A program made the translations under genes and the position numbers. DNA of 64,000 nucleotides from Scyliorhinus canicula (taxonomy: Eukaryota), in assembly GCF_902713615.1 (NCBI RefSeq), contig NC_052158.1, positions 13,326,546-13,390,545 on the forward strand. The letters run 5' to 3'. The notes under the pieces are model-generated. The model made no database searches. It saw nothing but the letters and a program-made list of their open reading frames with translations, and was not told the DNA's origin. Below are positions 26,621 to 60,570 of the stretch, piece by piece. Position 1 is the stretch's first letter; every line of letters starts with the position of its first letter.

Positions 26621-26639
26621 CAAGTCCTAGGTATTGTTT

Positions 26640-33924: not shown

Positions 33925-35516
33925 TACAGTTCCTGGCCTTGATGGTATGCATCCCAGAGTGCTAAAAGGGATGGCTAGGGAAATTGCAAATGCACTCGTG
34001 ATAATTTCCCAAAATTCACTGGGGTGGTCCCGGTGGATTGGAAATTAGCAAACGTGACAACACTGTTTAAAGAAGGAGGTAGGCAGAGAGCGGGCAATTA
34101 TAGGACAGTGAGCTTAACTTCGGTAGTAGGGATGATGCTGGAATCTATCATGAAGGAAGAAATAGTGAGGCATCTGGATAGAAATTGTCCCATTGGGCAG
34201 ACGCAGCATGGGTTCATAAAGGGCAGGTCGTGCCTAACTAATTTAGTGGAATTTTTTGAGGACATTACCAGTGCAGTAGATAACGGGGAGCCAATGGATG
34301 TGGTATATCTGGATTTCCAGAAAGCCTTTGACAAGATGCCACACAAAAGGTTGCAGCATAAGATAAAGATGCGTGGCATTAAGAGTAAAGTAGTAGCATG
34401 GATAGAGGATTGGTTAATTAATAGAAAGCAAAGAGTGGGGATTAATGGGATGTTTCTCTGGTTGGCAATCAGTAGCTAGTGGTGTCCCTGGGAATCCGTG
34501 TTGGGCTCACAATTGTTCACAATTTATAGAAATGATTTAGAGTTGGGGACCAAGTGCAATGTGTCCACGTTTGGAGACGACACTAAGATGAGTGGTAAAG
34601 CGAAAAGTGCAGAGGATACTGGAAGTCTGCAGAGGGATTTGGATCGGTTAAGTGAATGGGCTAGGGTCTGGCAGATGGAACACAATGTTGACAAATATGA
34701 GGTAATCCATTTTGGTAGGAATAACAGCAAACGGGATTATTATTTAAATGATAAAATATTAAAGCATGCTGCTGTGCAGAGAGACCTGGGTGTGCTAGTG
34801 CAGGTGTCACAGAAAGTTGGTTTACAGGTGCAACAGGTGATTAAGAAGGCGAATGGAATTTTGTCCTTCATTCCTAGAGGGATGGAGTTTAAGACAAGGG
34901 AGGTTATGCTGCAATTGGATAAGGTGTTAGTGAGGCCACACCTGGAGTATTATGTTCAGTTTTGGTCTCCTTACTTGATCAAGGACGTACTGGCACTGGA
35001 GGGTGTGCAGAGGAGATTCACTAGGTTAATCCCAGAGCTGAAGGGGTTGGATTACGAGGAGAGTTGAGTAGACTGGGACTGTACTCGTTGGAATTTAGAA
35101 GGATGAAGAGGGATCTTATAGAAATATAAAATTATGAAGGGAATAGATAGGATAGATGTGGGCACGTTGTTTCCACTGGCGGGTGAAAGCAGAACTAGGG
35201 GGCATAGCCTCAAAATAAGGGGAAGTAGATTTAGGACTGGGTTTAGGAGGAACTTCTTCACCCAAAGGGTTGTGAATCAATGGAATTCCTTGCCCATTGA
35301 AGCAGTTGAGGCTCCTTCATTAAATGTTTTTAAGGTAAAGATAGATAGTTTTTTGAAGAATAAAGGGATGAAGGGTTATGGAGTTCGGACCGGAAAGTGG
35401 AGCTGAGTCCACAAAAGATCAGCCATGATCTCATTGAATGGTGGAGCAGGCTCGAGGGGCCAGATGGCCCACTCCTGCTCCTTGTTCTTATGTTCTTATG
35501 TTCTTATGTTCTTATA
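33925..35516 (+). mobile_element. CR1 LINE, 5'-truncated, relatively young
   Basis: ORFs with NYRTVSLTSVVG, VYLDFQKAFDKMPH, FGDDTK; (ttcttatg)n 3' microsatellite. Confidence 0.92.
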
Positions 35517-38800: not shown

Positions 38801-38857
38801 GCAACCGCGTAGCTATGCTATGGAATAGTGTCATTTGGGCATTGCTGATGTTCCCTC
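38801..38857 (+). CDS. NCR3: Exon 2: signal peptide MLWNSVIWALLMFP (ATG 38815)
   Basis: Polypyrimidine acceptor acttctccttttctccacag|; donor C|gtaagt; phase 1 joins the V exon as Arg. Confidence 0.8.
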
Positions 38858-41800
38858 GTAAGTAATCTGCACCCGAGCTCTCTCGTTAGTCTATCAATAA
38901 GCACACACACACACACATGTACATATCCACATAGATACTTTTTATCGAGGTATATATACACACACATATACATATCTACACATAACTTCTGAAGAGGCAT
39001 GCATAAACGTATATGGACATAAATTAAATATTTATAGTGCCCATACACACGCTTCAATTAGCGATATACATACATAGGCAAAGACAGACAGACACACACG
39101 CACACACACACACACATGGTGGATGCGTAGATTCTGATACGCTGGCGACAGGGCCGGTGCTAGGAATTGCGGGCCCAATTAGAAAAGTGATGGCGGCCCC
39201 TACTCTACAAAAGTAAAAATTTATGTATGTTTATATTTCGTGTAGTATGCTGGTCTTTAACCAAAACAAAACATTAAATGCTTGATATACTAAAATTTTG
39301 AAACTTACTTACCCGGGCGGAAGGATTTGGCGGCGCAGGGCTGAAGGATTTGTCCCCAAAAGTAAAAACCACCCTATAGTTCCTCTTAGAATACAGAAAA
39401 GGCTTCAAACGGTAACTCTGTCGCCGCTGGCGCGGCCCCCTTAAGGTGTGGGGCCCAATTTGATGAAATTGGTCAAATAGGCTTAAAACCGGCCCTGGCT
39501 GGCGAGGTTCCTACATTACGAACACGGATTAAACGCCTCACGGCCGCTGGCGAAATTCACGTTCAGTAATGTAATAAAATAGACTTTTTTAAAGCCACAA
39601 TGAAAAACTAGTGTCAGGGATAGTGGCTATGAAATCATAACAGACTTTCTGGTTCACTGAATCTGGCCTACATGTGGCACCAGATCCACAGCAAAGGGGG
39701 TTTACTTTTAAGTGCCCTCAAACGCAATTTGGGATGACAGTAGACGCTGGCGTTGTCCGTGCCGCCTACGAAAATAATAATCTAAGCGTAGGTGTGGTCA
39801 AACCGATGTTTTATTTTATTGGGTCTTTGGCACAATAAAGCACTTCCAAAACACGGTGGTAACATTAACTGCTAAAGAATTGAAAGCAATTCTCGGAAGT
39901 GCTGTTGCAAATGATGCTGTCATTTATGCTCTGGAGGGCTGGAGAAGGCAATTCAAAGCTTTCCAGAAAGCATCCTTGGTCCATATAGTATGCGCCATTA
40001 TAGTTTCGGAATAGATAAGCGTCTGCAACCTATCACAGTCAGGAATGCGAGGGACCTAAGAGCCAGGTTATTTCAGGAGCGATGGCAGTGTAATTAATTC
40101 TCGTTGGGCTCCAGCGACGTTGGGCTCCAGCGACGTTGCCGATCAGACACATGAGAATTCAACAGAAAATCATTTCCTAACTTGCGCTTGCCTCCATGCG
40201 ACCAAGGGTCTCATTATGCAGATGCAAACGGCCTCTTCGCCTATACTTATTTGATGCTCGATGACATCTGAATATTTAAAAAGAGGCAGACGGAGAAATA
40301 TGGGGCAAGTGTGATTTTGTTCACTGACATTGACAGGAACCCAGAATGGTTACAGCTCAAAATCGGCCATTCGGTCCATTGACTCTATGGCCCCCTGAAG
40401 GAGTAACACACTGAATGCGATTCGCCTACCTTCTCTCCAGAATCCATCACATTCTTGGATTTCAGATATCAACCCGAAAGTCCTTTGAATTCCTCGATAG
40501 AACCTGCCTCCACTATACCCTCACGCCACGGATTGCAGACTTTCAATATCTGCTGCCTGAAAAAAAATCCTCATGTTTCCATTCCTTCTTTTGCCGATTA
40601 CCTTAATCTGTGCCCTCTGGTTCTCTGGTCTATTTTCATAACTGAAGCACCTCAAGTTCGTGAATATTTTCTGCACTCTCTTCAATCCTTCAAATCCTTA
40701 CCAAAATCTTGTGACCAGAACTGGACACAATACTCCAGTTGAGGCCAAACTATTGTTCTATATATGTTTGACATAACCTCCTTCCTTTTGTACTCTGTGA
40801 GCCATTAATAATGGTGCAGCTCTAGGGGCTGCACGTGGCGCAGTGGTTAGCAGTGGGACTGCGGCGCTGAGGACCCGGGTTTGAATCTCGTCCCTGGATC
40901 ACTGTCGGGGTGGGGTACACCCCCGCAACCCAAATATGTGCAGGTTAGGTGAATTGGCCACGCCAAATTGCTCCATAATTGGAAAAAATATAATTGTTGT
41001 ATTTTTGAATAGCAGTTCTATAATCCCGTCCTGCCATCTTCAAGGACTAATGTGCATACACATCTCTGTTGCTGCAGTTGTATCCTTTATTTTATCTCCT
41101 CTCATCATATTATTTCTGGGCGGCACGGTTGGCACAGCAGCAGGCTACCTCACAGCGCCAGGGACCGGGTTCACCTCCCACCTTGGACTCTCTGTTTCTG
41201 CATGGTTTCCTCCGGGTGCTCTGGTCCCGCCCACAGTCCAAAGATGTGCAATTTGGTGGATTGGCTAAATTGTCCCATAGTTTCCAAAGGTTAGGTGGGG
41301 TTACGGGGATAGAACGGGGCAGTGCACCCATATGGTGTCAGCAGACTCCTTCTGCACCGTAGGGATACTATGGTTTCTACCGGAGCGAATCACTTCACAA
41401 GTCTCTGCATTTAATTTAGATTCTCCGGTCCGCTAGCCGCGTGATTCTCGGCGGCGACAGTCCCGCCGTTTGTCCCATTGATGCCACCCAAGCTGCCGGG
41501 AAACCTGAGTGTGGGGAGGTGCTGCGAGTGGGAAAACTGAATCCTGCTGACCGCTTACTGTTTCTACTTATCGATTTTGTTGACATATAAGTTGCCCCTT
41601 ATATGCAAAAGAAAAGTCTGGCTAAAAAAACAGCGTACCACTAATGCGCATTAGCAACTCACCGGCCTGAGTGAAAACCTGGAATTGAGTTTGGTCGTTA
41701 TTGAAGAAAACGCCCGACTTCCGTCCAATTTGGTTTATAATTTATCGCGATGTTTATGCTCCCATCGGCAAGTTGGTAACTTAGCCATCCGAATTCGTAT

Positions 41801-44800
41801 CAGACATAATTAGCATCATACTGCAATATTCACGCTTCTGACTCGCTGGCGATAACAAAGTGTAGCATATTTGAAATCAGCGAATTATTCAGCAGCGACG
41901 CTGTCAGTTCAGACACGATAATATATTCCCATCCAATGATGGACAGCTGCAGACACGCTGTTCCTTTTGATTGGTGGTGCAGACGAAGGGGTAGAAAGCA
42001 AGCTGCCATATAGCATATCGTGAGATTGACTAAATTCTGAATTCAAGCTACAAAATCCTGGGTGGACTCAGTTTTCAGGCAGCACTAGTGTAAACCCTGG
42101 CGAAAAACGCAAACTGTAAGTATTTCAACTCTAGCAAACTGAGGCGTTATACGCTATGACGCCGAACTGCGTGTTGCTATTTGCAGCATCTGCAATCATC
42201 TGTAATTCTGAGCAAATGTTTTTGGGTGCAATTCTCTGGAACTCAAAGAAGAACAATGTAGTGGGGCCTTGGATATTAATGAGGTTGTTTTATGCTTACA
42301 GGAGTTACGGACTCGAGTGTTACAGTCAAGCAAACACCGATTTCGACCCGCGTTGCAGAAGGCGACACCTTACACCTGCATTGTAGTTTTAGTGTGAGTG
42401 CGGCCGAGTCAGGAAATACGTCCATCGGTTCACTTATTTGGTATAAAGATTCCGTGAACAATATAATTAATAGAAACTGCACAGAATATATGGGACGTGT
42501 TCAGCAATCCGATGTGTCTTTCTTCCGGAAATTTAAAAACGCATCCATATCAATAACCAACATGAATCTCAACGAATCAGGAAGGTATTACTGCGAGGTG
42601 GAACTTAACATCGGTGGAAAGGGGACAGGAGAAGGAACAAATGTCACAGTGAAGCGTGAGTTGGCATTATCGTATAGTTTGCACCTGCAGATTCATTCTG
42701 CTTCCAAAAAGATACTTAAGTGGAAACTGGGGATAATTAAACCGCCGGCACATTGAAATTTCCCTGTTGAAACTTGTCCAAACAAATTGTAAACTGACAG
42801 AATCGAATACTGTCCGAGTATTACACTCTGTCCAAATTTATTGCGCTTTTACAATAGTAGAGAACAATTCCAGGCCCGGTGTAGATCAGGCTTTGACAGA
42901 ATCGGAGAATGGTTACAGCTCAGAAGGAGATTATTCTGGCCACCGTGCCTGTGCAAACCCACTCTGTAATCTCACTGCAAGAGCTTGCCACAGTCCCGGG
43001 AACTTTCCTGAAATTGTATGGCATTTCGTTGTTCACATTAGTTCCTTCTCTTTTAAACCCAGGATGTTCTGTCTCCACTACACTCTGATACAGTGCATTC
43101 CATATCCCAAGTTCTTACTGCGTAAAATGCGTGTCCAAAATTCTATGATCTATGATTAACCTAGGACAAAAGTTCGGCACAATATCGTAGGCTGAAGGGC
43201 CTGTTCTGTGCTGTATTTCTCTATCTAAGGATCAAAGACTAAATCTACGCGTGGAGGTAGAGGGCCTGGCGACCGAACACACTAATACCATTCTTTCCCA
43301 TATGCCCTGTTGGCTGTTTTACAAATCACCTTAAATCTGTGTACTCTGGTTCACGACCCTAACATACTAGGGAAGAGATTCATTCTTCCTACACTGTCCG
43401 GACCCTCATGATTTTGGACAGATCATACAATCGAACCTGGAGATACTTTTCCAAGTAGTATCCGCATCTTCTCTAAAGCCTTGACATCCTTGTAAAAGTA
43501 TGGCACACAGAATTGGGAACAATGTCCCAGTCGAGGCCGGAATCGAGTTTTATAAGTGTTCATCATATTCATCAAAGCTTCATTGATTCATTACTGAGTA
43601 CCTCCATTTATAAAGCCCAGGATCCCACATACTTTTTAAACCACTTCGTCAAGGCGCCTTTCTAATTCCAACGATTTCTGCACACACAACGTATATATTC
43701 CCTGCCGCTCTGTGCTTCTGTAACTTCCTTAAAATTTCGACCTTGATTTTATACAGTCTGTCCTAGTTCCCGTCTAAGATGTATCGATTCACATTCCTCG
43801 GCATTACATTTCACGTGCTCTGTGTCTGCCGTTTCCATCAGCCTGTTTATGTCATCTTGAAGTCTATCACGAACCTCCTTATAGTTCGCAACGTTTGGTG
43901 TCATGTTAACTTCTGTTGGTGTCTATGTGACAAGACAAAAATTATCCTCATTCTGATGCCAGACCTTCATCGAGTCGAAAAAGGTCGTTTGTCGCTTATT
44001 CCCCTATTTGTCATTTAGCCATTCCTTACATTTGTCCTTTGATCACACAATCGTGAACCTTGACACGTTAAATACATGTGGTATATTATTAAACAGCGTT
44101 TGGAAGTGGAAGTCCTGTACTGCATCTATCACTTTACCCTCATATTTTTGTATGTTTTATCACTTTACCCTCATGACCCATCTGAAAATAGATTCTTAAG
44201 ATAGTTAAACACGACTTGACTTGAATAAATGCATGCTGGTTTTCCCTCATAAATCTACACCTGTGGAAGCGACTGGGTCTGTTCCCGGTTATTACCTCGA
44301 AAGATTTGACATCACCAATGTTAAATTGACTGCTCATTTTCTTTTCTTAACGCTACAACACTTGTAGCTCTCCCATTCTCTCAAATGTATTTAAAGAAGA
44401 TGAAACAATTGTGGACAATGCCACGGCAAGTTTCTCCCATGCATCCTGAAACTTCCAGGGATGCATATCATTCGTTATATGGACTTTTGAACTTTATGTA
44501 CAGTCGGTCTTTCGAATACCTCCAGTTATCATTTTTTGACCATATCCAGAGTCTCCGGAAGGGCTCCAAAGGCGCTTTCTTCTAAAAGGAAACAAAGTTC
44601 CACAGCGAGGGCGTTTAGCCGCATGTTTCCAGGCGCCCCGACTCGCCTTGTACAAATGGTCTGAATGGGGAACGCACGTCCGAAACCGCACATGGTTTAG
44701 CGAGAGGCCTCCGAAGCGATCGCCGACCTCCCCACAGCCCGAATGCACTATGGGAGGGGCCAGGGATCCTCCCCGCACCCATAACACCCAAACAGGGCAC

Positions 44801-47800
44801 CCCCAGCCCGATCACGCGCTTGTGCAAAACTGCCAGGTTGGCACCACCACATTGGCATTGCCCGTGCCAGCTGGCGGTGTCGTATTTGCACATTGGCAGT
44901 TCCAGGCTGTCACCCTGGCGGTACCGTCAAGGTGCCAGACTGGCGCTCTCAGGGTGCGCAGATGGCATGGCCAGGATGCCGGGATGGCTACAGCAGTCCC
45001 AGTGCAGCACCCTGCCCAAAGGGAAAGTAGCTGGGGACCGCAGACCCCCCCCCCCCCCCCCCCCCCCCCCCCCGCCACCCCTCCTCCGCCACCACCACCG
45101 CACAATGGTTGCGTTTACAACGCAACGTCTTGCGAGTTCGCGTTGGACCTCCCACACGAGGCGTTGCGAGCTGTGCAGATTCCGGGAGCCGGGTCTATCG
45201 GCTTTTATCGCCCATGCTACCAAAGTTCCATGGGCGCGATTCAATGGCCAGGCTGCGCCCATGCTGCACCATGGGCCATTGAATCGTTCCCATGGGACTT
45301 TGGCATCATCGTATCCTTGTGAATAAAGCATACAAAGCACTAATTTATGCCTGAGCCCCATGTCCCATAGCTCCTTGCGTAGATTACGTCTTTGGTCCTT
45401 AATCTGTCCAGCCCTTTACCTTCTCCCCATTTTCTATTTAAATGCATGTAAACGTGTGGATTCCCTTCATGTTAGCTGTCAACCTTTTCTTCTGGATTCT
45501 CTTTTCGTCGTTGTTTTACTTTTCATCCCCACTCTGTTTTTTCTACTTTCAGCCTGGTTTCTATTTGCACTGACAATAAACTTTAAATGAACGATCATAA
45601 TTTACGCTTCATCTCTCATCTTCTGTTGAGCTCTAACGTTGTTTGCCCTGTTGTTCCACTTGTGAGAATGCACCTCTATTGTACTCAAGTGGCGTAGATT
45701 AATTCACAGGATTGGTAAGGGGGAAGCTACAGGACGTTTAGCCAGCAAACAATGAAGGAACAACAATATATTTGCATGTTGCTTGGCTTGGAGGGAAACT
45801 TCCAGTTGGTGCTGTTCCCATCTCGCACAATGGTCATGGAAGAACATTTCAACTGCTGCACACCACAACCTCAACTCAGACCACAGGTACCCACAACAGC
45901 CATCTGAATGCACGCCCCTTCAGTCGAGCCAGAACGACTGTATACCAAGCCATGAAAGATCCTCGATGCATTGGCCACTTGGTATATGACTTGCCACCTT
46001 GCCGTCCGTCATGCATGCCGAGGACAGCAAGCCAGTGTCACGTAAATTATTTCCCGAAATGACACCCACAGAGCAGAACCTTCCCCTTATTGCGCGCCCA
46101 TGGGAGTTTGTAATGGAGGACACCATGAGTAACATGTGCAACAGTTTGCTTTAACAAATTGTTTCCAGAGGGAAAACAGAAAGGTTATGCAGGTCGGATT
46201 TCGGGAGGTAAAGTAGCTTGAATCACGTGTTGGGCATAAATAGCAGCATACTCCAAGTTGCCCGAAAGGCCTGTTTCTGTGATGTACATCGTAAGTAATT
46301 AAAATGTACCATCTTTGACGTACATTTCCCCTTCTAAAAACTGCAGTTACCAAAATTTAATGGAAAGCATGACGCCTGCAGCTACTTGTCATCAGAAGGA
46401 AATTAATATGAAAGAGAAATGATCCAAAAATCACATGTACTAGTGCTCAAGCTCCAGGACACGTTTCAAATAATGGTGCAGTTGAGAATTTTAGCTTAAA
46501 ATAGTTTATCTTTGTCTATATCAATTCCATACCGTTTTACAGACTTTTAATCCGCTCGGCTGATTTACTGATAGTCGGGAAATTTACATTCAGTAATTAT
46601 ATTCAGGAGGAAAACAAAATAGTATCAGTTTTGAATGCAACCACATCATTGATACAATAATCTATCTGGGTTGGTAATGTGATTTAGGGAAGGAAGCCTT
46701 CAATCCTGACCTGGCTTGAGTCGATATGTGACTCCCGGCAATGATGTGCAGACTTACTGAAATGTGCTTGCCTCTTAACTGTCCTCTGCAAAAGCCGAAT
46801 GTACTATTCAATTATAATGAAGATAGCTTGACATTTCAAGAGCAACTAGGAATGGACAACACATTCTAGCCTAGTCTGTAATACCCAACTGTGTGAGTGC
46901 CACACCCGAAAATTCAGAATTGAATGTCAAGTACTTAATTGTCCCGTAAACATCAGTAACTGCATGCGTCGAATCTTTTGGGGAATAAAGCAATCAACGA
47001 GAGTAACCCACTTTTGTAAAGTTTCAGACGCTGCAGTTTGCAACCAGTTCACGTCACCTTGCTGAAATCATGTGGGTAGACTTCCGAATCGAAGCTATTA
47101 TAAGTTCATGTTACATTCGTCATCAATACCCAGCTGCTCTAACATACAGACGAACATAACGAATTAAGAAGAGGAAAAGGCCGTTCAGTCCCTTTCCCCT
47201 CATGGCGGGCGGATGGGATGGTGACCCCAAATCCACATTCCGCCTGTCACCAGCAACCACTGACTCCTTCGTTAATCGCAATCACGGTGCAGTGGAACGG
47301 GTGACTTCGGTATATTCATTTCTTAAATAAGCGTTATTAAATAAGTGACAGAAAGTGAATTATCTTCATGATCCCTCCTTCATTATGTATTGCCACATGA
47401 CTACAGTTGACAATACTTGTCACTGAGGAGCCAGCATCCCAAGAATATAAATTAGACAAGTCAGGACAGAATGGGGGCATTCTTGTTGTGCGGGGCTTTA
47501 CCATATCTTTCGTTTTATACACGTCTGATATCAAGATGTTAGATGGGCAGAATAGGCAAACAAAATGACGAACCATACGTTCCTCTACCTCGAACAGCAA
47601 GAAACACGACAGCAGGGACATAGATTGCCATTTGCTGTGGCAACCATTCTTATGTTTGGGAAAATCATTCTTTAATGTTGGGTGCGGCAATCAGAATTCG
47701 AGGCACCTTCAGATATGTCAAAATACTGAGAGCAAGCAAAAAACTTACTAGAAATCCAGGCTCCGGCTGCCGTAAAACCTATAATTTATTTGTGTTCCTA

Positions 47801-50800
47801 ACGTTATTCCTAAGCAAATAGACAGTAGAGTGGAGCGAGAGTGAGATGCACAGAACTGGGGACTCCACACCCCATCACACCGCGCACCCAGCCACAGGAT
47901 CCCCAAAGGAATCTTGTATTCACCGAAGTGGCACTTTCTGCTCACCATGTCCCTGCTATTCTGCATCAATGTTCTTGTCTCACAACCTAAGTTGTTGTTT
48001 TTCTCAACTGAAAGATATGGCCAACAATAGCAATCAGCAAAACACAAACGAGGGTGTGGCACGCTATTCTTCCCTTATCTTCTCACAATCTTGGTGCTCT
48101 GTCTTGCACCGAGGGGCTGGAACGTGTCGGCGGTTTTTCAACTGCAGCAGAAAACCAAGGCTTCATGAGAAGCACAGAGGAAGATGGAAATAAAACATTT
48201 TGTTTTGCTTACTCTCTAAAGGTCATGGCCATTCTGATGTGACAGTCCCACCGAGACAAAGGAACAACAATCTGCTTATGTTCTCAGTGCTGGTGTTTGT
48301 GCTGCTCGCCCTCATCGTAATTATATTAACCTATACTCTGCACCGTTGCAGACCTCCAGGTAATTATCCCAAAGTCGATTTTTTAAACAACCTGGAGCGA
48401 AATAAGGCACACCTACTTTTTTTTAAATTGCAGACTATGAATTGCTATTTGTCTGAAGATTAACATCTATCTATGGCATACATTGTAATACACCTACAGT
48501 AACACGGAAATAATCAGCATTATTGATAATCACAATAACGTCGGCATTACCATTATTATTCGTAACTTCCAAAAATTATTTAATAAGGTCACAACATTAA
48601 TTTTACGAATGTAGTTTATATTTTGCCATTTTCAAGCTGTAAATATAATGGTTCGTGTCCTAGGTATATTATAATTCATAGGAAATATGGCCATTCGGCC
48701 GAACCAGTCCATGCCAGTTTTATACTCCACTAAAGTCTCCACCCAACTTTTCTCATCTAAATCACCTATCATTCTAATCACCAATCCTCCCTCATGCTTG
48801 TCTACAATATCCTTACAGAAAACTATACCATTCACGACGGTCATTCCTTGTGGTAGTTAGTCACACCGTCCTACCCGATTTTCAGTAAAAAGGTTTCTTC
48901 TCATTTCCAGATTTGCTGCTCATTATCTTGTACGAATGGCTTCTATTTTTGCACTTCCCCACAAGACGAAAGATCATGTCCGTATTCACGTCTTCAAATT
49001 ATTGTCACCTCTATTGGCTTCAACTGACGAAACAGACAAATCAATCGTAATTTGGATCATACTCAATACACATTTTGTGAAATACTGATCTAACTACAGG
49101 CTGGCTTTGGAGGGTTTGTTATGCGTCTCTGAGTTCTAAAGTCAGGGTCTCTGCTCCTAGAATTTTGATATCCAGGGAAATCTCGGAAGCTTCTTCTTTT
49201 ATGAAGTATTAGTTATTTTTCATAGTAAACAAACCAGGGGCTGGTTTACCTCACTCAGCTAAATCACTGGCTTTTAAAACAGACCAAGCATGTCAGCAGC
49301 ACTGTTCGATTCCCGTACCAGCCGCGCCAGAATGTGGCGACTAGGGGCTTTTCACAGTAACTTAATTGAAGCCTACTCGTAACAATAAGCGTTTTTCATT
49401 TCATTTCATTTCCGACCCAAGCATCAGGTGCCCTCGGAGAGTTTGTTTTCGCTGTTTCAACACGAAATATTATCAGTGAAGAATCCAGATATTCAAATTG
49501 TTGGTCTTCCTTTTCCCACGAAACTAATTACGCTGAATTCCTTCTTTTCACACACAAGTATCTTTCCCTCTTTACTGTCATGCCTCAAGGTCCCACTATG
49601 GCCCTTTCCCTGCCTCAACAAAATCTACCAAAATTTTATATTCCTCTTTTCGCCACTAAACCATCGTTTTCTAAGAGTGCATGGAACCCATCTGTCAATC
49701 CTTTCCTGAGGTGCACATCCATGGAGATCTGGTATCATCCATGTAACTCTTCCCTGCCTCCACTCCAGTGTCTCAGTGTCATTCTTATAACATGTTGACC
49801 AGAACTGCACGCAGTATACAAAGTGCAATGGAAGTGCAAAATTCAGTACAGATTTGGCAACATTTCCGACTTTCCATTCTCTCCCACTAGAAATGGAAAC
49901 CAGTGTCTAACTGGTTTTGCTAACCCGTGGCACAATATTCAGTGAATTCTGTGGGCTCCATTTGTTCCTGTACCCCAGTTAAATTTGACCCTTACAAGTA
50001 AAAGGTGATTTCCCTGTTCTTCCTACTAACATATACTATTTCACATTTTTTTGTGCTGAAATAAATTTGCCCACTATTTTGCCTATTCTGCAACTTTATT
50101 ACAAATCGAGTAATTTGTAGGCGATCTCCTGAGTATTAGCTATCCCCGTTGCATTTCTCTATTCGGTGATTTGTAAACGACAACTTTAAAAAAATGTTTT
50201 TATTGGCATTTTCAATTTTTCAGAGTAAAACATTTGTGTTCGATATTTACAATTTATACAGTTTTTTATGTACATACATCTTCCTTGCTCTCTCTCTCTC
50301 TCCCCCCCCCCTTCCTGTCCCCTCCTTGGTATCCCTCTCTTCCACCCTATCTCTGAGCGCCTGTTCCCCCTCATTTTCCCCTTCCCCAGACTGCCCATAA
50401 CTTTCCTCCTTCGCAGTGTTGATACGGGGATTCTTGGATTGTTAAACACCCCCCTCCCCTCCCCCCACACCCCACACACAAACGCCATGATCATTTTATC
50501 TATGCTATGGATTAAGGCCTTGGGGATGAAGATCCATATGAATCTGAACAGGAAGAGGAACCTGGACAGTACGTTCATTTTGATCATCCACACCCTTCGC
50601 GCCAGTGAGAGGGGGAACATATCCCATCTCCGTAGGTCCTTTTTAACGTCCTCCACCAGACTGGTCAGAATCCACTTGTGGATCCATGACCAGTCGTGGG
50701 CTATCTGGGTCCCCAGATAGTGAAATTTCCTTTAGACTAGTTCCTCCAGCTCTGTTCCGCCACAATTTGGATTCACCGGGAATTCCTTGTTCTTGCCCAT

Positions 50801-53800
50801 GGACGGTTTGTAGCCTAAGAAGGCCCTGACCGCTTTCAGCAGCTGCATGATTGCGCTCAAACCTAACTCTGGTTCCAAGAGGAGCACGTCATCCCGTCCA
50901 GCTTTTGGCATCTCACATAGCGATCACCAGGGGTTCAATTGCTGGGGCAAACAGGACGGGGACAGAGGGCATCCCGGCCATGTGCCTCTGTGCAGGTGAA
51001 AGTATTCAGAGCTAGTGGTGTTGGTCCGAACGCTCGCCTTGGGGGTGTTTTACATGATTTTCACCCAGGTGAACCCTGCTCCTAGTCCAAACCGCTCCAG
51101 TACTTCAAAGAGAAACTTCCACTCGACTCTGTCGAAGTCCTTTTCTGCATCTAGGGAGTCAATGACCTCTTGTGTTCTCTCCAGGGGTGGGAGGAGGGTT
51201 ATTATTACATTCATCAGCCACCTGATGTTCGACGTTAGCTGCCTACCCTTGACAAAGCCCGTGTGGTCCTCTACCACAATGTCTAGTATACAGATCTCCA
51301 GTTAGGATTTTCGCGGGTACCTTCATGTCTTCAGTAAATGGGTCTGTACGACCTGCATTCCGTGGTGTTTTGTCTTTTTTGGGTATCAGCGATATTGTGG
51401 CCTGTGTTAGCAGAGGAGGCAGGGTGCCCCTCCCTAGTGGGTCTGTGAACATATCCCTTAGGTGTGGTCCCAGGTCCGGCGCAAATATTTTATAGAGGTC
51501 CACCGGGAACCCATCAGATCCTGGTGCCTTCCCGGCCTGCATGGGGCTGATGCAGTCCATGATTTATCTCAGACCTGTTAGTGCTTCCAGTCCCCCCCTC
51601 CTCCCGCCGGCCCTCCCCCACAAGAGGCATATCCAGTCCATCGAGGGACTGTTTCATCCCCGCGCCCCCGTCGGGGAGCTTGGAGGTGTACAGCCTTCGG
51701 TAGAAGATGTGAAATGCCCGGTTGACCACTTTGGGTTCAGTTACCAGTCTGCCTCTGCTATTTCTACCTGTGCTATCTCCCTCGTGGCTGCCTGCTTTCT
51801 CAGCTGGTGAGTCAGTAGGCGGCCAGCTTTTTCTCCGTGTTTGTAGAAGGTCCCCTGTGTCTGGCAGAGTTGGTGCACTGCTTTCCTGATGTGTAGCAGG
51901 TATTTTTTTTGCAGTTTTTTTGTCTCCGCCAGCAGCTCTACGGTCGGGGCCTGGGAGTACCTTCTGTCAACCACAAGGATGGAGTCGATGAGTTGCTGCC
52001 TGGCTGCCCACTCTTCCCTTTCTACGAGCGTTATAGGCTATAATTTCTCCCCTTTTCATGGCCTGCAGTGCCTCCCAGTGCCCGTCTCCAACCTACATCC
52101 ATGTAGTGTGGGGCATGTTTGAAGATGACTGTCACGGAATATTCCGCTCTTACTATTCCTCATTTCCCCACTGGAAAGAAGTCGATCCGGATGCATACCT
52201 TGTGGACCAGTGAGAAGAATAAGAATTCCCTCTCACCAGGGTGCAGGAACCGCCATGGGCCCCGTCCCCATCTGTTCCATGAATGTTCCCAGCTCCCTAG
52301 CCATGCTTGTCTTTTTTCCCGTTCTGGGGTTTGATGGGTCAGTCAGCGGGTCCTGAATGCAGTTAAAGTCGCCCCCCGCCCCCCAACATGATCAGTTAGC
52401 ATGTGTCAATGTCCGGCATTTCCGCCATGGTCTTCTTTAAAACGTCTGTGTCATCCCAGTTGGGCATGTAAACATCTCAGGCACCGCTGAACAATATGTA
52501 CTGTCCCCTTCTGTCCGCAACCATCTTCGTCCTCTTGATAATCAGCGTGGCTACTCCCCTAGCCCTTGTTCCGGAACATGAATGGTGCGTCTGTCCCACC
52601 CAGCCTTTTCTTACCCGCAGTCGGTCCTTCCCCCTCATTTGATTCTCCTGCATGTGGGCCTTTATACTACTTAAGTGCGTGAACACTCTGGATCATTTGC
52701 CTGCACCGTTAAGAACCTTACCATTGTAGATGATGATCCTGACGGGGGGTTTCTGTTGCCGTTCCTGCGGGGTCGCAGGACGCGCCCCTGCACTCCGGGT
52801 TTTCCCATTGTGCAGGGGGCACCCAACATCGCCGCCAACTATATGTCCGCCACGTGGTGTGCTTCTGCACTCCGGGATTTCCCTTTATTTAAGGACTTTC
52901 CAAAGTAGCTGCTTGCGGCGCCATCTTGTTTCTTCGGCCTGCTCTCTGCCTGCCAAAGACAATCCCGGTGCCGACTCTTTTTCCGTCCTGTTTCCCACAT
53001 ATTCTTTGTTCGCTCCCAGCATCTCCCCTTGCCCCCCATCCCCCCACCCTCTCCTCCCCGTTCTCCCACCTTGCTCCCCCCCCCCCCCCCCCCCCCTCAG
53101 GCCAGGAGCTCCCGCCATGCTGGAGAGAAAACTGCCTGTTTTCCCGTGCTAGCCCTCCCCGGTAGTAGGTCCACCCCAGGGCTGTTCGACTACAACTATT
53201 AATGTGATTGATCCGTTATATTGCGTTAAATGTAATCGCCGACTGTTGCGATTCATTATTCCCGCCAGTGGAACACTTCAGCCCGTGGGTGTCCCGGCGG
53301 CGTGAGGTGACTTCACTGGGAAAACCCGCTGACAAGCGGCGGAAAAACAGAATCCTGGCACCAGTGAACGGTGAGCCGCGAAGAAACAAGCAGCTGGGGA
53401 ACCATAGATACAACCCATTGTGCGAATGTAGGGTTGGGCGTGAAAAATGGGACCCTGGGAAGCTGAGAGAGCAGCCTGAACCTCTGAATCTTTAATCCTA
53501 CTTAGCACCAAGTAGCAATAAAATCAGTTTGGCGCTTCTATCATTGTAAACATATCCAATGTACTTCATAGGAGTCATTAGACAAAATTTTATAACGAAT
53601 CGCAGAGGGACGTGTTAAGCCCGTTGGCAGCTGCTGTGGAGTGAAGTAGAGGGGAAACCAGAAGAACAGAACAGCAGCAAAGTATAAGGCAAAGTTGCCA
53701 TAGTCCCAGATGACCATAGGCTGTTTTCCCCTTTGAAGGGGAGAGCTAATTTAACCTGAACATCATCACACCTCAGGGGCAAGGTTAAGAGGGCGGGACT

Positions 53801-56800
53801 TGGCGAATAATCTCATCCCGTGCTGTTGGCCACGCGTTGCATCACGAACCAGCGGCCTAGCCAAGTGCACTAAACAGGCCACGTAGCAAAGTCGAACACC
53901 ATCAGAACTACAAGAGCGCAAAATCATCTGTGCTGCACTGCATTCAAGTAGATGTTATTTTTTAAAAAATCATAACATTACAGGGTCATGATAGAAATTG
54001 CAGGTTATTGAAACCTAGTAAACCTCAGTGTTTCAAATGTCAGTCATTTTCTCCAGTGCCAAGCTTGTTCTTGAACGTTCCAATGTTTTTTTTAAAGTTG
54101 CATTATAAGATTATTAACGATAAACTGCGAATAATATGATTTGTAAAGTAAAAGGGCCAGTTAATGAAGAAATATATTCCGTTCTTAAAGTTTTTCTATA
54201 GTTTTGACGGTCGTATTTGGATTGTTAGTTTTGTTTTAGTTTAAACAGATCTAATAGATTTTAAAATTTTTACAGCTCAAGCAACTGGAGCCCAAACTGT
54301 AAACGAGGTATGCACCATAATTTATTGAACACTCTTGATTTGCACTATTATGGATTACCATTGTAGCGGTGTCTTCTTCAGTAATATGATTCACGTTGCA
54401 CGAAGCCACAGGATCAGAACCACTGAATCACAGAAAATACAGTGCAGAAAAGGTCCTTCGGCCCATCGAATCTGCACTGACACATGAAATATACCTGACC
54501 TACCTACTCATCCTATGTGCCAGCATCTGGTACGTAGAATATCACGATGTGCCATGAGCTCATCCAGGTACGTTGTAAAGGATGTGAGGCAATCCGCCAC
54601 TACCACCCTCCCAAGCAGTGCATTCCAGACCGCCAGCACACTCTGGGTAAAGAGATTTTTCCTCACATCCCCTGAAACGAAGTGGAAGCCCGGTTTGTGA
54701 GCTGGAGCGGCGGCTGGGGGCACTGTGGAGCATCAGAGAGGCGGAGAGTGCCATGGATGGCACAAGTAGAGAGGTGGTCACACCGCAGGCTCAGAGTCTG
54801 CAGGCAGGAATAGAATGGATAACCACAAGGCAAAGCAAGAGAGCTAGTCAGACAGTGCATGAATCTCCTGTGGCCATTTCCCTGCAAAACAAATATACTG
54901 CTTTGGATACGGTTGTGGGAAATGACTTCATGGGAAAGCAGCAGCAGCAAATCCGTTGTACCACGGATGGTTCTGCTGCTGATGGGAGGTGCAAAACGTG
55001 TGTGAATGCAATAGATATAGGGAATTTGATTGTAAGGTGATTTGATTGTAACAGGAATGGATAGACATTTCTGTGTCTGCAAATGAGACGACAGAATGAT
55101 ATGTTGCATTCCTGCTGCTCGGGTCAAGGATATCTAGGAGTGGTTACAGAAGATTCTGGAGGGAGAGATGGAACAGCCAGTGGTCGTGATGCTCGTCGGC
55201 ACCTACGACATTGGGGAAAAAAGTGATGAGGTCCTAAAAGCAGATAGCGGGAGTTAGGAAGTACATTGAGAAGTCGTACGGGGAAGGTAGTGGTCTTATG
55301 TTTACTACCAGTGCCATGTGCCAGTCTGGGTAGAAATAGCACGATACATCGGATGAATACATGGCTGAAGAGATGGTGTGAGGGGGAGGATTTCAGATTC
55401 CTGGGGCATTGGGACCAGTTCTGGGGTAGATTGGACCAGTACAAACTGGATGGCTTACACCTAGTCACGACCTGGACTGATGTCCCAGCGGGAGCATTTG
55501 CTCGAGTGGTTGGGGAGGGTTTAATCTTACGATGGGAATCCATACAAGGACTCAGAGGAGGAGGAAAGTAGAACAAAAACAAAATACAGAAAGTGGAATA
55601 AAAACAAATGATTGGCAGATAAAGCAAGGGCCAGATTCAAACAGAACCACAATGAAAAATATTGGGAGCGAGACATGTAATGTTAAAAGACATGGTAAAA
55701 GGCTTTGTACCTTTACTGTGGGCAGCACGGTAGCACAGTGTGTAGCACTGTTACTTCAAAACTCCAGGGTCTCAGGTTCAGTTCCTGGCTTCGGTCACTG
55801 TCTGTGCGGAGACTGCATGTTCTCCCTGTGTCTGCGTGGCTTTCCTCCGGGTGCTCGGTTTCCTCCTACAAGTCCCGAAAGACGTTCTGTTGGTAATTTG
55901 GACATTCTGATTTTCTTCCCGTGTAACTGAACAGGCGTCGAAATGTGACGACTAGGGGCTTTTCACAGTAACTTCATTGCAGTGTTAATGTAATCCTACT
56001 TGTGACGATAAAGAATATTATTATTAAAGTTTTTGAAATTATAAATGCGTTGAGCATTCACAATAAAGTAGATGAACTCACAACGCAAATAGATGTAAAT
56101 GGATATGATATAATCGAGATTATGGTTGCAGGGTGACCAGAGACGGAAACTGAATGTCCTGGGGTATTCAGTATTTAGGAAGGACAGATAAGAAGGTAAA
56201 GACATGGATTGGCAGTCCTACTTAAAGAGTAAATTGACGTAATATTGAGGAAGGATATTAGTGTTGACAATGTGGAATCTGTATGGGTAGAGTGAGAAAC
56301 ACCAGAGGGCAAACAACATTGGTGGGTATTATATGTTCACCCCAAACTGCAGTGATGACGTTGGGAATAGCATTAAATAGGAAATGAGTATTTTAATCTG
56401 CTTATAGATTTGGAAAATCAAATTAACCACAAAGCCATAGAGATAAAATTCCTGGAGTGAATATGGGACGGTTTTCTGGACAAACATGTTGAGGAGCCAA
56501 CTAGAGAACAGGCCATCCTAGACCGGAAAGTGTGCATTGAGAACAGAGTAATTGGTAATCTAGCTGAGCGAGACAACTTGGGGATGACGAATGTTTCATG
56601 AAAGAATTTTTCATCAAAATAGTGTGTGAAGTAGCTGATTCTGAGACTCGGGTTCCGAATCTGAATAAATTTAACTACGATGATATGAGGCATAAATTGG
56701 CTTTTGTTCGATTGGGGAATGGTACTTGAAGGGATGACACTGGCTAGGCAATGGGAAACATTCAAGGAGAGCAGAGGGGAACTGCAACAATTGTTTATTG

Positions 56801-58755
56801 CTGTCTCGTGCAAACGTAAAATGGGCAAGATGGGCAATCCATGGCTTACAAGAGAAATTAGAGATGGCATTTGATCCAAGGAAGAAGCATATAAGCTGGC
56901 CAAGAAAAACAACAGGTCTGAGGATTGCGAGCAGTTTAGATTTCAGCAAAGAAGGATCATGGTGTTGACTAAGAAAAGGAAAATAGAGTATGAACGTAAG
57001 CTTGAAAACAAAATGGAAACTGATTGCAAAGGTTTCTATAGGTACATTAACAGAAAAAGAGTATTGAAAATACATATATTTTTGTCTGTACCGAGGTACA
57101 GTAAAAAGTATTATTCTGCGTACACTTCAGACAGATTATTCCATATATGAAAAGAAAATATCTTGAGAAAACATAAAATACACTATGTAAATACATAGAC
57201 ACAGACATCGGGTGAAGCATACAGGAGTGCAGTACTACTCAGTAGAGAAGATGTCTGAAGCGATCAGATCAGTACATAAGAGGGACGTTTTGGAGTCTGG
57301 TAACAGTGGGAACGACACTGTTTTTGAATCTGTTAGTGCATGTTCTCAGACGTTTGTATCTCCTTCCCGATTGAATAAGTTGGAAGAGGGAATAAGTCGT
57401 GGGAGGGGTTGATTATGCTGCCCGCTTCCCCAAGGCAGCGGCAGGTGTGGGCAGAATCAATGGATGGGAGGCGGGTTCCTTTGATAGCCTGGGCGGTATT
57501 CACGACTCTCTATAGTTTTAGTTCGTTCTTGGGCCAAGCTGTTGCCATACCAAGCTGTGATGAAGCCAGATAGGGTGCTTTCTATGGTGCATCTGTAAAC
57601 GTTCGTAAGAAAAAATATGGACATGCCGAATTTCCTGAGTTTTATGAAAAAGTATAGCTGCTGCTGTTTCTGGGTCGTAGTGTCGACGGGCTGGAGCAGG
57701 ACAGGTTGTTACTGATGTGCACGCCTGGGAATTTTAAGTTTGCAGTATCTCCACCTCGGCCCCATTGATGCAGACAGGGGTATGTACGATACTTTGCTCC
57801 CTGAACTCAATGGCTAACTATTTAGATTTACTGACATTGAGGGAGAGATTCTTGTCGTTACAACACTCCTCTAGGCTTTCTATCTCCCTCCTGTATTCTG
57901 ACTCAACATTGTTCGAGATCCGACCTACTATGATCATGATCTCAGAAAATCGGTAGATGGAGTTGGAGCCACATTTTGCCACCCAGTTGTGTGTGGAGGG
58001 AATATAGTAGGGGGCTAAGTATGGGCCCAGTATTGAGGACTATCTTGGAGGAGATGTTGTTTATCCTTACTGATGGTGGTCTATGGGTCAGAAAGGCAAG
58101 GAGAGTTGCAGAGTGAGGAGCCAAGTCTTAGATTTTGGACATTTGATACGAGCTTCTTAAATTGGGCCATGTTGTGGTCACTTTCACTAAAACGCTCCCC
58201 CACCCCGACCTCAATAAATTTCGGCTTCATTCCCAAGAATTACGTCCAGCACTGCTCCGCCCCTTGTTGGACCCTCTGCATGTTGACCTAAAAAGTTATC
58301 ATGTGTACATTGCGGGATTTCCCATTGCCACTACCCCACACCATCGGAAAACCCGAGGGAGGAGGTGTGCTGCCGGTGGGAACAGAGAATCTCAACGGCC
58401 TGCAACATTTTGCTTATTTCTGAAGCTAGGTGTTGTGCTGCGCCTTTCTAAATGTTGAAAAAAATTATCTGTTTCATTTAAGGAGGAAGACACGTCGGAC
58501 ACTCTTATTTATACAGACCTTAACATCAGCCATGCCCGAGCTGAACGGATTGCGTTCGAGAGGGCGAGGCCACGCAAACAGCGTAAACATCGAACAGCGA
58601 GTGGATCGGTGCCACTTCCAGACGGACGTGCAGAACCGATTATATACGCGGCACTGCACCACACAGGTTGCGATAAGGAACTGGTTCAGTTCGGGCCCAT
58701 GCAGAGCGTCGGAAGGAGTGAAGAGGAAACCATATACTCGACAGTGCGAGTGTAG
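38815..58755 (+). CDS. NCR3: NKp30/NCR3-family single VJ-type Ig-domain receptor, ITIM/ITSM-bearing; join(38815..38857,42302..42655,48222..48359,54276..54307,58483..58755), 279 aa
   Basis: Manual splicing: five coding exons, all GT-AG, junction phases 1,1,1,0, total 840 nt ending TAG at 58753-58755. Architecture is signal peptide, V domain, TM, long tail. V-domain motifs (IGSLIWYKD, NCTEYMGRV, YYCEVELNIGGKGTGEGTNVTV) align by eye with human NKp30 (IGSVTWFRD, NGTPEFRGRL, YVCRVEVLGLGVGTGNGTRLVV). The symbol means family member, not proven 1:1 orthologue. Confidence 0.85.
38900..39118. repeat. (CA)n/(TA)n microsatellite patches in intron 2
   Basis: Direct reading. Confidence 0.8.
39149..39497. 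mobile_element. hAT-superfamily MITE (Tip100-like TIR CAGGGCCGGT), 349 bp
   Basis: Perfect 10-bp TIRs and a perfect 8-bp TSD GCTGGCGA (39141-39148, 39498-39505). Confidence 0.9.
40330..40800 (-). mobile_element. CR1 3' fragment
   Basis: ccagaactggacacaatactccag and CR1 tail motifs. Confidence 0.7.
40825..41375 (+). mobile_element. Two V-SINEs (40825-41000 type C end; 41117-41375 CR1 tail)
   Basis: Heads, cores and tails read directly. Confidence 0.8.
42302..42655 (+). CDS. NCR3: Exon 3: VJ-type Ig V domain
   Basis: Acceptor tatgcttacag|, donor AAGC|gtgagt, 354 nt phase 1-1. Canonical B-strand Cys, C-strand Trp, ExGxYYC and J-like GxGTxVTV. Confidence 0.95.
43140..44200 (-). mobile_element. 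CR1 fragments in intron 3
   Basis: CR1 tail (43140-43225, apparently + strand) and reverse RT-end motifs. Confidence 0.65.
44590..45310. mobile_element. GC-rich non-autonomous DNA-transposon-like element with terminal hairpin
   Basis: GC/CpG-rich island within AT-rich intron, poly-C run and an inverted repeat at 45214-45309; family not identified. Confidence 0.4.
48222..48359 (+). CDS. NCR3: Exon 4: stalk plus transmembrane helix LLMFSVLVFVLLALIVIILTYTL plus HRCRPP
   Basis: Acceptor ttgcttactctctaaag|, donor CCAG|gtaatt, 138 nt phase 1-1; 23-aa hydrophobic run (48272-48340) followed by basic stop-transfer residues. Confidence 0.85.
48640..50180 (-). mobile_element. CR1 fragments with a nested short SINE (49237-49412, +)
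   Basis: Reverse VYCVQFWSTCYKND CR1 motif; SINE ends (tttca)n. Confidence 0.75.
50185..53180 (-). mobile_element. L1-clade element, 5' end present, multiply internally deleted, antisense in intron 4
   Basis: ORF1 start (MAGAPG...), EN motif RVRKGWVGQTHHSCSGTRARGVA, RT GFVKGRQLTSNIR / SLDAEKDFDRVEW, and PLSLARRV...RFLFLF; A-rich 3' end. Confidence 0.85.
53683..53876 (-). mobile_element. tRNA-SINE-like repeat (same family as 4808-4958)
   Basis: Mutual similarity. Confidence 0.6.
54276..54307 (+). CDS. NCR3: Exon 5: 32-nt cytoplasmic mini-exon (A)QATGAQTVNE
   Basis: Acceptor aaaatttttacag|, donor GAG|gtatgc; converts phase 1 to phase 0 exactly as needed to link exons 4 and 6. Confidence 0.7.
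54410..54680 (-). mobile_element. CR1 3' end
   Basis: Reverse RKNLFTQSVLAVWNAL. Confidence 0.8.
54690..57070 (+). mobile_element. CR1 LINE 5' part: ORF1 with SGNH-esterase domain plus ORF2 endonuclease, interrupted by a V-SINE (55718-56015)
   Basis: SPVAISLQNKYTALDTV; NTWLKRWCEGEDFRFLGHWDQFWGR...DGLHL; LN..SIHNKVDELTTQID..GYDII. Confidence 0.85.
57070..58150 (-). mobile_element. Rex1/Babar LINE, second copy
   Basis: Collinear with 25505-26620, with internal deletions. Confidence 0.85.
58483..58755 (+). CDS. NCR3: Exon 6: cytoplasmic tail with ITIM LIYTDL, ITIM IIYAAL and ITSM TIYSTV, then stop
   Basis: Acceptor gtttcatttaag|; phase-0 frame open for 90 codons (EEDTSDTLIYTDL...EPIIYAAL...EETIYSTVRV*). 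Confidence 0.85.
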   Translation, partial: EEDTSDTLIYTDLNISHARAERIAFERARPRKQRKHRTASGSVPLPDGRAEPIIYAALHHTGCDKELVQFGPMQSVGRSEEETIYSTVRV

Positions 58756-58844
58756 TGTTTGTTGCAAAATGCCGTGTTTTTTTCAATTGAAGGCATGCTA
58801 TTAATTTTAACCACGCGGTTATTACGTTTAACCAAAGTTTCTTT

Positions 58845-60570
58845 CAGACCATAAGATGGTCCTAGGCCCATTTGGCCCATCGAGTCTGCTCCGTCGTTCT
58901 ATAATGGCTGATATGTTCCTCATCCCCATTCTCTTGCCTTTTCCCAATAACCCATGATCTACATATTAATCAAGAACTCCCCTTATTAATCAAGAAACCA
59001 GAATTGTGCTTGAGGTGCTGTTACCTACAGGGCTACTGAACTGCAACTAGAAGCAGGAGCAGGCAATTTAGACTCTCGAGTATGCTCCACCATTAAATAC
59101 GTTCAGGGTGATCTCATCGTGGCCTTACCTCCATTGTCCTGCTAGTTCTCTGTAACCTTTCAACCTATTACCAATCAAAGATCTGTCTAACTCTTCCTTA
59201 AATTTACTCATTGTCCCTGCATCCACCACACACTGGGGTAGCGAATTCTACAGATTCACAACCATTTGAGAGAAGTAGTTCCTCCTCATCTCTGTTTTAA
59301 ACTTCCTTCCCCTTATCTCGATACTGTGAATTCTTATTCCAGTATGTCCCACAAGAGTAAAAATCCACTCCACATCTACTGTATCTGTACCTTTTATCGT
59401 CTTACACACCTGAATTTGATCTCCCCTCATTCCTCTCAACTCTAGATAGTATGTGCCTAAACTGCTCAACCCCTCTTCATAGGACAAACACCTCAACTCT
59501 GGAATCAACCCTTCTCTGAACTGCCTCCAATGCCACTATATCTTTCCACCAATTTGGGGGCAGCACGGTAGCACAAGTGGCTAGCACTGTGGCTTCACAG
59601 CACCAGGTTCCCAGGTTCGATTCCCCACTGGGTCACTGACTGTGCGGAGTGTGCATGTTCTCCCCGTGTCTGCGTGGGTTTCCTCCGGATGCTCCGGTTT
59701 CCTCCCACAGTCGTGCAGGTTAGGTGGATTTGCCATGCTAAATTGCGCTTAGTGTCCAAAAGGTTAGGTGGGGTTATTGGGTTACGGGGATAGGGTGGAG
59801 GTGAGGGCTTAAGTGGGTCGGTGCAAATTCGATGGGCCGAATGGCCTCCTTCTGCACTGTATGTTCTATGTTTAAAGGGAGCAAAACTGTGCACAATACT
59901 CCAGGCGCGCTTTAACCAATGCCTTGTATAGTTACAACAAGATCCCTTTACCTTTATGTTCCATTCCCTCAACTATAAATACCTACATTCCATTCACTTT
60001 CTTTGTTATCTGCTGTACTGTCATGCTAGTTTTCTGCAACTCATGTGGGAGGACACCCAGATCCCTCTGTACCAGAGCACCCTGAAGTTCTTACCCACTT
60101 CCATAATAAGTTGCCTTCCTATTTTACAGACCAAAATTCATGACCTCACACTTATCCACATTAAACTCCGTCTACCACATTTTGGCCCATTCTCCTAACC
60201 TCATTGCAACTTACTGTGCCACCTATTTCAGTGTAATCTCAAAATGTGGCTATAGGACCTTCTATCCCTGTATCCAGGTCGTTAATATATATTGTAAAAG
60301 TTGGGACCCAAGGCACCCCACTAGTTGCATCTCATCATTCAAAAAGGACACATTTATCTGGACTCTCTTTTGTAAGTGATCCGGTCTTTTATCCAAGCTA
60401 ATAAATTACCTCGAACCCCAATTGTGTCGTAACCTTCAGTGCAGCACCTTATTAAACATCTTCGGAAGTCGAGATGTACTACATGCACAGGATCCCCATC
60501 GTCCAATTTGCTTGTTATATCTTCAAGAACTCCAGCAAATTAGTCAAAAATGATCCTCTCTTAGTATTCA
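58845..60570 (-). mobile_element. CR1 fragments with a nested V-SINE (59556-59872, +)
   Basis: Reverse ORF IPELRCLSYEEGL...EMRRNYFSQMVVNL. Confidence 0.8.

Follow-up and report, generated by a model that had tools for sequence, protein, structure and literature searches.

A probable inhibitory-type member of the NKp30 (NCR3)-like receptor family in the shark Scyliorhinus canicula

The window analysed here is a stretch of 64,000 nucleotides (64 kb) of Scyliorhinus canicula DNA (RefSeq assembly GCF_902713615.1, contig NC_052158.1, positions 13,326,546 to 13,390,545 of the forward strand). Only one gene in it is recognised as cellular, at 38815-58755 on the + strand, and the window otherwise contains transposon debris. 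With a probability of roughly 0.7, we read this gene as intact, transcribed and spliced, and its product as an inhibitory form within the elasmobranch NKp30 (NCR3)-like family, a glycoprotein with type I membrane topology. Five coding exons on the + strand were rebuilt from the window sequence, and their limits are identical to those first proposed in an initial annotation of this DNA:

38815-38857, + strand: exon 1, 43 nucleotides, phase 0 to 1; ATG and signal peptide (starting MLWN), donor GTAAGT
42302-42655, + strand: exon 2, 354 nucleotides, phase 1 to 1; a single V-set immunoglobulin domain
48222-48359, + strand: exon 3, 138 nucleotides, phase 1 to 1; cysteine-free short stalk, membrane anchor and basic stop-transfer sequence HRCR
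54276-54307, + strand: exon 4, 32 nucleotides, phase 1 to 0; cytoplasmic micro-exon encoding AQATGAQTVNE
58483-58755, + strand: exon 5, 273 nucleotides, phase 0 to stop; 90 residues of cytoplasmic tail, TAG at 58753-58755
58756-59097, + strand: 3' untranslated region (UTR), with its predicted end at the first poly(A) signal of a scan (ATTAAA, 59092-59097)

All four introns are bounded by GT and AG, the exon phases match throughout and the 840-nucleotide reading frame stays open over the five exons, giving a protein of 279 residues. From its N-terminus it is predicted to comprise a signal peptide, a single V domain, a membrane anchor lacking charged residues and 103 residues of cytoplasmic tail. 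The gene structure and the protein architecture claimed in the initial annotation were thus reproduced from the sequence. The 1-1 phase pattern is classical for exons of the immunoglobulin superfamily. Splice-site scores by themselves are not decisive for exon 4: a de novo search for this exon ranked by such scores yielded 616 candidates, with the true 32-nucleotide exon in ninth place, so that outside evidence from homology and RNA is needed. At the V exon, the acceptor at 42302-42305 is a tandem (CAG followed directly by GAG). Use of the second AG (42305) would place Leu instead of Arg-Val at the signal-peptide junction. This acceptor was rejected and 42302 is favoured, because homologues retain the Arg-Val/Ile encoded from 42302.

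Evidence for transcription comes from Logan contigs of sequencing runs of the species. Words of the V exon are present in runs X1 (0.91), X2 (0.38) and X3 (0.34) and words of the tail exon in X1 (0.83), X3 (0.61) and X25 (0.21), all of them runs of one study, P1; both sets of words are absent from 17 other Logan-contig runs of the species. A contig of X1 (222 nucleotides, no mismatches, on 48308-54307) joins 48359 to 54276 and skips 5916 nucleotides; the joint is listed as 48356 to 54273, GT..AG, with a cut of +3. A contig of X3 (151 nucleotides, no mismatches, on 54200-58900) joins 54307 to 58483, skipping 4175 nucleotides, and is listed as 54305 to 58481, GT..AG, with a cut of +2. Further, contigs of X1 and X3 are collinear from the tail exon into the 3' UTR, beyond 58900. 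Both joints of the micro-exon are found in spliced contigs, and therefore the chain from membrane exon through micro-exon to the exon carrying the tyrosine motifs is real. This answers a doubt raised in the initial annotation, namely that the last exon might belong to another transcript. Of the junction evidence that it had proposed for every joint, the two joints of the micro-exon are now covered by contigs, while junctions 1 to 2 and 2 to 3 rest on homology. Exon 4 shifts the phase from 1 to 0, hence skipping it would break the frame: a direct join of exon 3 to exon 5 is out of frame and meets a stop after 13 codons, at 58519-58521. Such skipping is predicted to leave a form that is anchored in the membrane but lacks all tyrosine motifs. 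Because of this frameshift a direct splice between exons 3 and 5 was rejected, and no such joint occurs among the contigs.

Two further observations concern the contigs. The first base of the X3 contig is 54276 itself; in a de Bruijn assembly such a start is a hint that more than one sequence precedes this point, unspliced RNA being an example. A 182-nucleotide X1 contig (depth 2.5, no mismatches) lies at 58127-58308 inside intron 4, 175 nucleotides upstream of the tail exon; it may stem from precursor RNA before splicing or from an exon missed so far.

Searched exhaustively by HMMER, the V exon matches 236 proteins at E <= 0.001. The best single-V proteins among them are P0002 (280 residues, V domain 65% identical), which is horn shark XP_067865303.1 with the automatic name 'natural cytotoxicity triggering receptor 3-like', and P0006 (294 residues, V domain 57% identical), which is whitespotted bamboo shark XP_043533738.1 (LOC122541177) with the automatic name 'uncharacterized'. 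In full-length alignments the 279-residue model is 51% identical to the horn shark protein (E 2e-73; residues 1-279 against 1-280) and 45% identical to the bamboo shark protein (E 1e-79). Both alignments are free of gaps over every exon junction, including the 11-residue block of the micro-exon. The N-terminal MLWN is common to bamboo shark P0006 and stingray P0017. The tail of the horn shark protein, used alone in tblastn, matches the window at 58480-58752 (E 6e-12), and the tail is thus homologous in its own right. The two shark proteins resemble the window protein in being collinear from end to end, in their exon-sized blocks, in an uncharged anchor core and in a C-terminal xVYAxVR[VL]. They differ from it in their tails: the first two tyrosines are gone from the horn shark protein, and that of bamboo shark has about 15 additional tail residues and a degenerate second motif. 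The approximately unbiased test does not reject a clade uniting these two proteins with that of the window (p-AU 0.43). The two are probably orthologues or close paralogues of the window gene.

A locus of the brownbanded bamboo shark (Chiloscyllium punctatum BEZZ01000537.1, L001) repeats this exon order (signal, V, membrane, tail) within some 16 kb (9552-25712). Its counterpart exons, unannotated publicly, are:

9552-9593 of L001: signal exon
12258-12626 of L001: V exon
16610-16747 of L001: membrane exon

An exact-pattern search of L001 did not find the small exons of the bamboo shark protein. The protein chiPu_0012138 (P0172, 152 residues) is a mis-modelled bamboo shark fragment, in which a spurious first exon is joined to the real tail exon with its immunoreceptor tyrosine-based inhibitory motif (ITIM). 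Word-index protein searches with P0002, P0006 and a 14-sequence alignment returned almost only the queries and no protein from the window.

The sequence features that argue for an inhibitory form lie in the membrane anchor and in the tail, which adds to its ITIMs one immunoreceptor tyrosine-based switch motif (ITSM). The stalk before the anchor, RHGHSDVTVPPRQRNNN, has no cysteine.

48272-48340, + strand: transmembrane helix LLMFSVLVFVLLALIVIILTYTL (residues 150-172), without Lys, Arg, Asp or Glu
58504-58521, + strand: ITIM 1, LIYTDL (Tyr199), at the site of a recurring elasmobranch motif [VIT]xY[AST]xL[NRKH][IV]
58639-58656, + strand: ITIM 2, IIYAAL (Tyr244), aligned to the conserved EExVVYAxV block of the relatives
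58729-58746, + strand: ITSM, TIYSTV (Tyr274), 30 residues past Tyr244 and 5 before the C-terminus

Every tyrosine of the 103-residue tail (3/3) lies inside a [SIVLT]xYxx[ILV] motif, and three such motifs were reached in 30 of 200,000 shuffles of the tail. The three sites correspond to blocks found in shark and ray tails, that is a membrane-proximal [VIT]xY[AST]xL[NRKH][IV], a central EExVVYAxV and a terminal xVYAxV near the C-terminus. The terminal motif is the most conserved one in the tail (TVYAAVRV in horn shark, IVYATVRL in bamboo shark, FVYAAVNV in stingray). The activating NKp30 type combines a basic anchor residue with a short tail, and neither is found here. An uncharged anchor with at least one cytoplasmic (S/I/V/L)xYxx(I/V/L) motif, by which an inhibitory class is recognised, is present. 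The claim of an inhibitory-type tail with two ITIMs and one ITSM is therefore upheld for the sequence, inhibitory signalling itself being predicted from the motifs.

An alternative reading of the same tail is that the C-terminal TxYxxV serves as a switch motif for adaptors of the SAP/EAT-2 type, as in 2B4 and the SLAM family, and that the receptor is co-stimulatory or dual in its effect depending on the cell. TIYSTV does match the ITSM consensus, it stands at the one motif retained in all close relatives, and the look-alikes that a language model proposed for the tail are tyrosine signalling adaptors of mixed sign (HGAL, SIT/TRAT1 and LST1), with scores all below 0.9 that make them leads only. 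Yet two classical ITIMs accompany the ITSM, an ITIM-ITSM pair about 30 residues apart is the arrangement of the inhibitory receptors PD-1 and BTLA, and the terminal motif in many relatives, [IV]VYA[AT]V, is an ITIM rather than an ITSM. We therefore regard a switch role as unlikely.

Pfam recognises the product of the V exon as a V-set domain (E 5e-12); both canonical cysteines are present, as are five sequons for N-glycosylation. The exon closes with a J-like motif joined in the germline, which was read directly from the sequence:

42616-42654, + strand: J-like motif GKGTGEGTNVTVK, at the 3' end of exon 2

The G-x-G-T...V columns of this motif are invariant in the family alignment. Since V and J stand on one exon, no rearrangement is needed; within the 64-kb window neither a split by recombination signals nor a further V or C exon is present. 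The domain had been claimed to be of a non-rearranging VJ type, and the V segment plus J-like G-x-G-T-x-V-x-V motif on a single exon bears this out.

Concerning the family of this domain, its best match among solved structures by phmmer against the PDB is human NKp30 (3NOI, E 7e-10). An amphioxus IgVJ-C2 protein (1.5e-6, about 2000 times weaker), the coxsackie-adenovirus receptor (5e-6) and SIRP-alpha (0.0016) follow. A profile built from nine elasmobranch V domains likewise has NKp30 as its top single-domain PDB chain (60 bits), the rows above it being multi-V constructs with summed domain scores. The AlphaFold model of the V domain is of moderate confidence (mean pLDDT, the predicted local distance difference test, 72.7) and poor in the C'-C'' region; searched with Foldseek, this predicted fold again has 3NOI as its top match. 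Hamster NCR3 and the author-deposited nurse shark NCR3 QTT61904.1 (P0052) each share 38% identity with the V domain. In a maximum-likelihood tree of V domains (36 rows), all NCR3-like rows are split from SIRP-beta at 100/100, the NCR3 of mammals and the nurse shark protein named NCR3 by its authors fall inside the group of relatives, and the horn shark and bamboo shark proteins are nearest to the window protein. The tree supports membership of the NCR3-like family, short of proof. The NKp30-type ectodomain suggested in the initial annotation thus holds by sequence, by elasmobranch profile and by predicted fold. Of the phylogeny that it had proposed, the separation from SIRP-beta was obtained, with SIRP as the single outgroup.

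It has to be considered whether the V domain is only of the ancient germline-joined VJ type and comes from a different V-set family (CD28/PD-1/BTLA, SIRP, NITR-like or CAR-like), so that 'NCR3-like' would be an artefact of naming. V-set domains are hard to assign and the identity to mammalian NCR3 is low; automatic names of the relatives are inconsistent ('SIRP-like', 'pIgR-like' and 'IGSF11-like' occur) and the Foldseek margin of NKp30 over VNAR and T-cell receptor (TCR) V-alpha is small. Against this stand the first rank of NKp30 by three methods and its distance from SIRP-alpha in E-value, the position of mammalian and nurse shark NCR3 inside the tree and of SIRP-beta outside it, and the fact that no CD28-family chain occurs among the best 60 PDB sequence matches to the V exon. 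As regards the CD28/CTLA-4/PD-1/BTLA group, the stalk also lacks the cysteine found in CD28 and CTLA-4, a dimerisation cysteine that is absent in PD-1 too. As regards SIRP, no C-domain exon lies between the V and transmembrane exons, that is, there is no C1 domain. Assignment to another family is, in our judgement, very improbable.

With the ectodomain of the NKp30 type and the charged anchor and short tail missing, the window protein is classed as an inhibitory-type member of the NCR3-like family; its tail does not exclude it from the wider family, because that family also holds ITIM-tailed members. Mammalian NKp30 is an activating receptor and signals through CD3-zeta/FcR-gamma. Mammalian NKp30 (NCR3; 3NOI, 3PV6, 6YJP) shares with the window protein the single V domain with a joined J-like GxGT on one exon, the short stalk and the type I topology, but has an Arg in its anchor and a short tail free of ITIMs, whereas the anchor of the window protein is uncharged and its tail of 103 residues bears two ITIMs plus an ITSM. 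Nurse shark NCR3 P0052 is an elasmobranch non-rearranging VJ receptor of NKp30 type from the same group of the tree; it differs in being of the activating type, its anchor containing a Lys and its tail having about 7 residues. The tails of PD-1, BTLA, SIRP-alpha and PECAM-1 resemble that of the window protein in the uncharged anchor and in an ITIM followed some 20-30 residues on by an ITSM, and LIYTDLNI is similar to the SIRP-alpha motif ITYADLNL. These four receptors have ectodomains of other families, and the window protein has no C domains. Xenopus XMIV and teleost NITR are multigene families with VJ-type V domains on single exons, which comprise activating members with a charged anchor and inhibitory members with ITIMs. 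They belong to other lineages, and their likeness to the window gene is a lead only. XMIV, or multicopy NKp30 genes, in Xenopus were reportedly described by Ohta (2006, J Immunol) and Flajnik (2012, Immunogenetics).

Under the reading of an inhibitory NKp30-like receptor, the non-rearranging V(J) domain would bind a cell-surface ligand, probably of the B7 family by analogy with NKp30 and B7-H6. Src-family kinases would phosphorylate Tyr199, Tyr244 and Tyr274, and the ITIM at Tyr244 and the ITSM at Tyr274 may together recruit the tandem-SH2 phosphatases SHP-1/SHP-2, perhaps also SHIP. The recruited phosphatases would damp adjacent activating receptors. Having no basic residue in its anchor, the receptor should not pair with CD3-zeta, FcR-gamma or DAP12, the adaptors that carry immunoreceptor tyrosine-based activation motifs, and lysine-anchored relatives with short tails would be its activating counterparts.

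Several points weigh against this reading. RNA support is thin, with one contig per joint and a word depth of 4.0 in X1 and 2.4 in X3. What kind of runs these are is a guess, their patchy coverage and splice joints behaving like RNA, and one oligo-dT RNA run has no reads on the exons. No single molecule among the contigs spans exons 1 to 5, so that the joints upstream of the membrane exon are taken from homology. The tree has SIRP only as its outgroup, and its ingroup was picked by similarity to the query. Two of the three tail tyrosines are replaced in the horn shark protein, the closest relative (by His and Ser). The C-terminal motif remains there, and not all three motifs need thus be functional. 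Finally, inhibitory signalling, docking of phosphatases and binding of a B7-H6-like ligand are drawn from motifs and from analogy. A redundant or decaying copy from a birth-and-death cluster, transcribed weakly and yielding no functional protein, would fit the very low expression in only four runs of one study and the dead members that clusters of natural killer (NK) receptors usually contain, but appears highly unlikely in view of the open 840-nucleotide frame with canonical splice sites throughout, the correct splicing in RNA contigs and the collinear architecture with conserved motifs in two sharks of different orders, horn shark and bamboo shark. Thus the switch role, the membership of another family and the decaying copy are each made unlikely by the evidence.

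The initial annotation had gone further and suggested paired activating and inhibitory NCR3-family receptors in cartilaginous fish. Short-tailed relatives with a Lys in the conserved anchor motif G[VL]KLAVF are found in nurse shark (P0052), red stingray (P0017, P0041) and skate (P0059); the anchor of mammalian NCR3 (P0103) carries Arg. In red stingray the lysine-anchored P0041 and the ITIM form P0033 have sister V domains (98/92) that are 63% identical. On the tree, the type of tail switches at least five times among 27 labelled rows, as is expected of a birth-and-death family exchanging signalling modules. As elasmobranch relatives of both types exist, ITIM-tailed and lysine-anchored with short tails, a paired inhibitory and activating family is plausible. 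The search by tblastn for a charged, short-tailed partner, which had been proposed along with this claim, found none within the window; the 64 kb hold no activating partner and no second V, transmembrane or tail exon.

The tail module, ITIM-ITIM-ITSM with the 32-nucleotide micro-exon, is common to divergent V clades of sharks and rays, and ITIM-tailed 'NCR3-like' models are also found in bichir, sturgeon, lungfish and salamanders (axolotl and a newt). Conceivably, the NKp30-type V domain has had this module as its partner since ancient times; in that case the ancestral system of jawed vertebrates would have been a paired inhibitory and activating one, of which amniotes would have kept the activating gene only, a scenario that we hold to be possible but doubtful. 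An ancient paired NKp30 system, if true, may never have been set out in print. To our knowledge, no NK receptor other than NKp30 can be followed through the jawed vertebrates, and its only known role in mammals is an activating one. With the window gene, the question whether the old NKp30/B7-H6 axis acted as a balanced pair of on and off signals can be tested on a defined gene.

The gene is an additional member of the published shark NCR3 family and no new kind of receptor. A family with eight nurse shark subtypes was reportedly published by Kinlein et al. in 2021 (Immunogenetics 73:333); the GenBank records of the nurse shark family are MT914154-MT914161. In literature on NKp30 in shark, Xenopus and catshark we found no paper on an ITIM-bearing shark NKp30, the text of Kinlein 2021 lying outside this search. 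Because ITIM-tailed models are already contained in public shark and ray annotation and the shark family is published, the novelty is smaller than first suggested. A specialist would find the gene expected rather than surprising, with the broad spread of the inhibitory tail module as the most interesting thread. The gain is incremental: gene models can be corrected or added, since the micro-exon is easily missed, and the gene may be useful as a marker of NK-like or T cells in shark single-cell data.

In the surroundings of the gene, three broken reverse-transcriptase frames of long interspersed nuclear elements (LINEs) were found:

34024-35067, + strand: broken LINE reverse-transcriptase frame (Pfam RVT_1 E 1.6e-13)
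25723-26623, - strand: broken LINE reverse-transcriptase frame (Pfam RVT_1 E 4.4e-15)
50186-51560, - strand: broken LINE reverse-transcriptase frame in intron 3 (Pfam RVT_1 E 3.5e-4)

Rfam and tandem-repeat scans of the window gave nothing relevant. A tRNA-derived repeat resembling a short interspersed nuclear element (SINE), with the core GGAATGTGGCGACTAGGGGCTTTTCACAGTAAC, has copies at 49108-49507 in intron 3 and at 55770-56083 in intron 4, and further copies at about 13635-13823, 6258-6437 and 63791-63909. These SINE-like copies draw a word depth above 300,000 in RNA-like runs, and intron depth is uninformative on the gene for this reason. A poly-C or C-rich low-complexity tract at 45045-45093 in intron 2 gives rise to long spurious proline-rich and glycine-rich frames on both strands.

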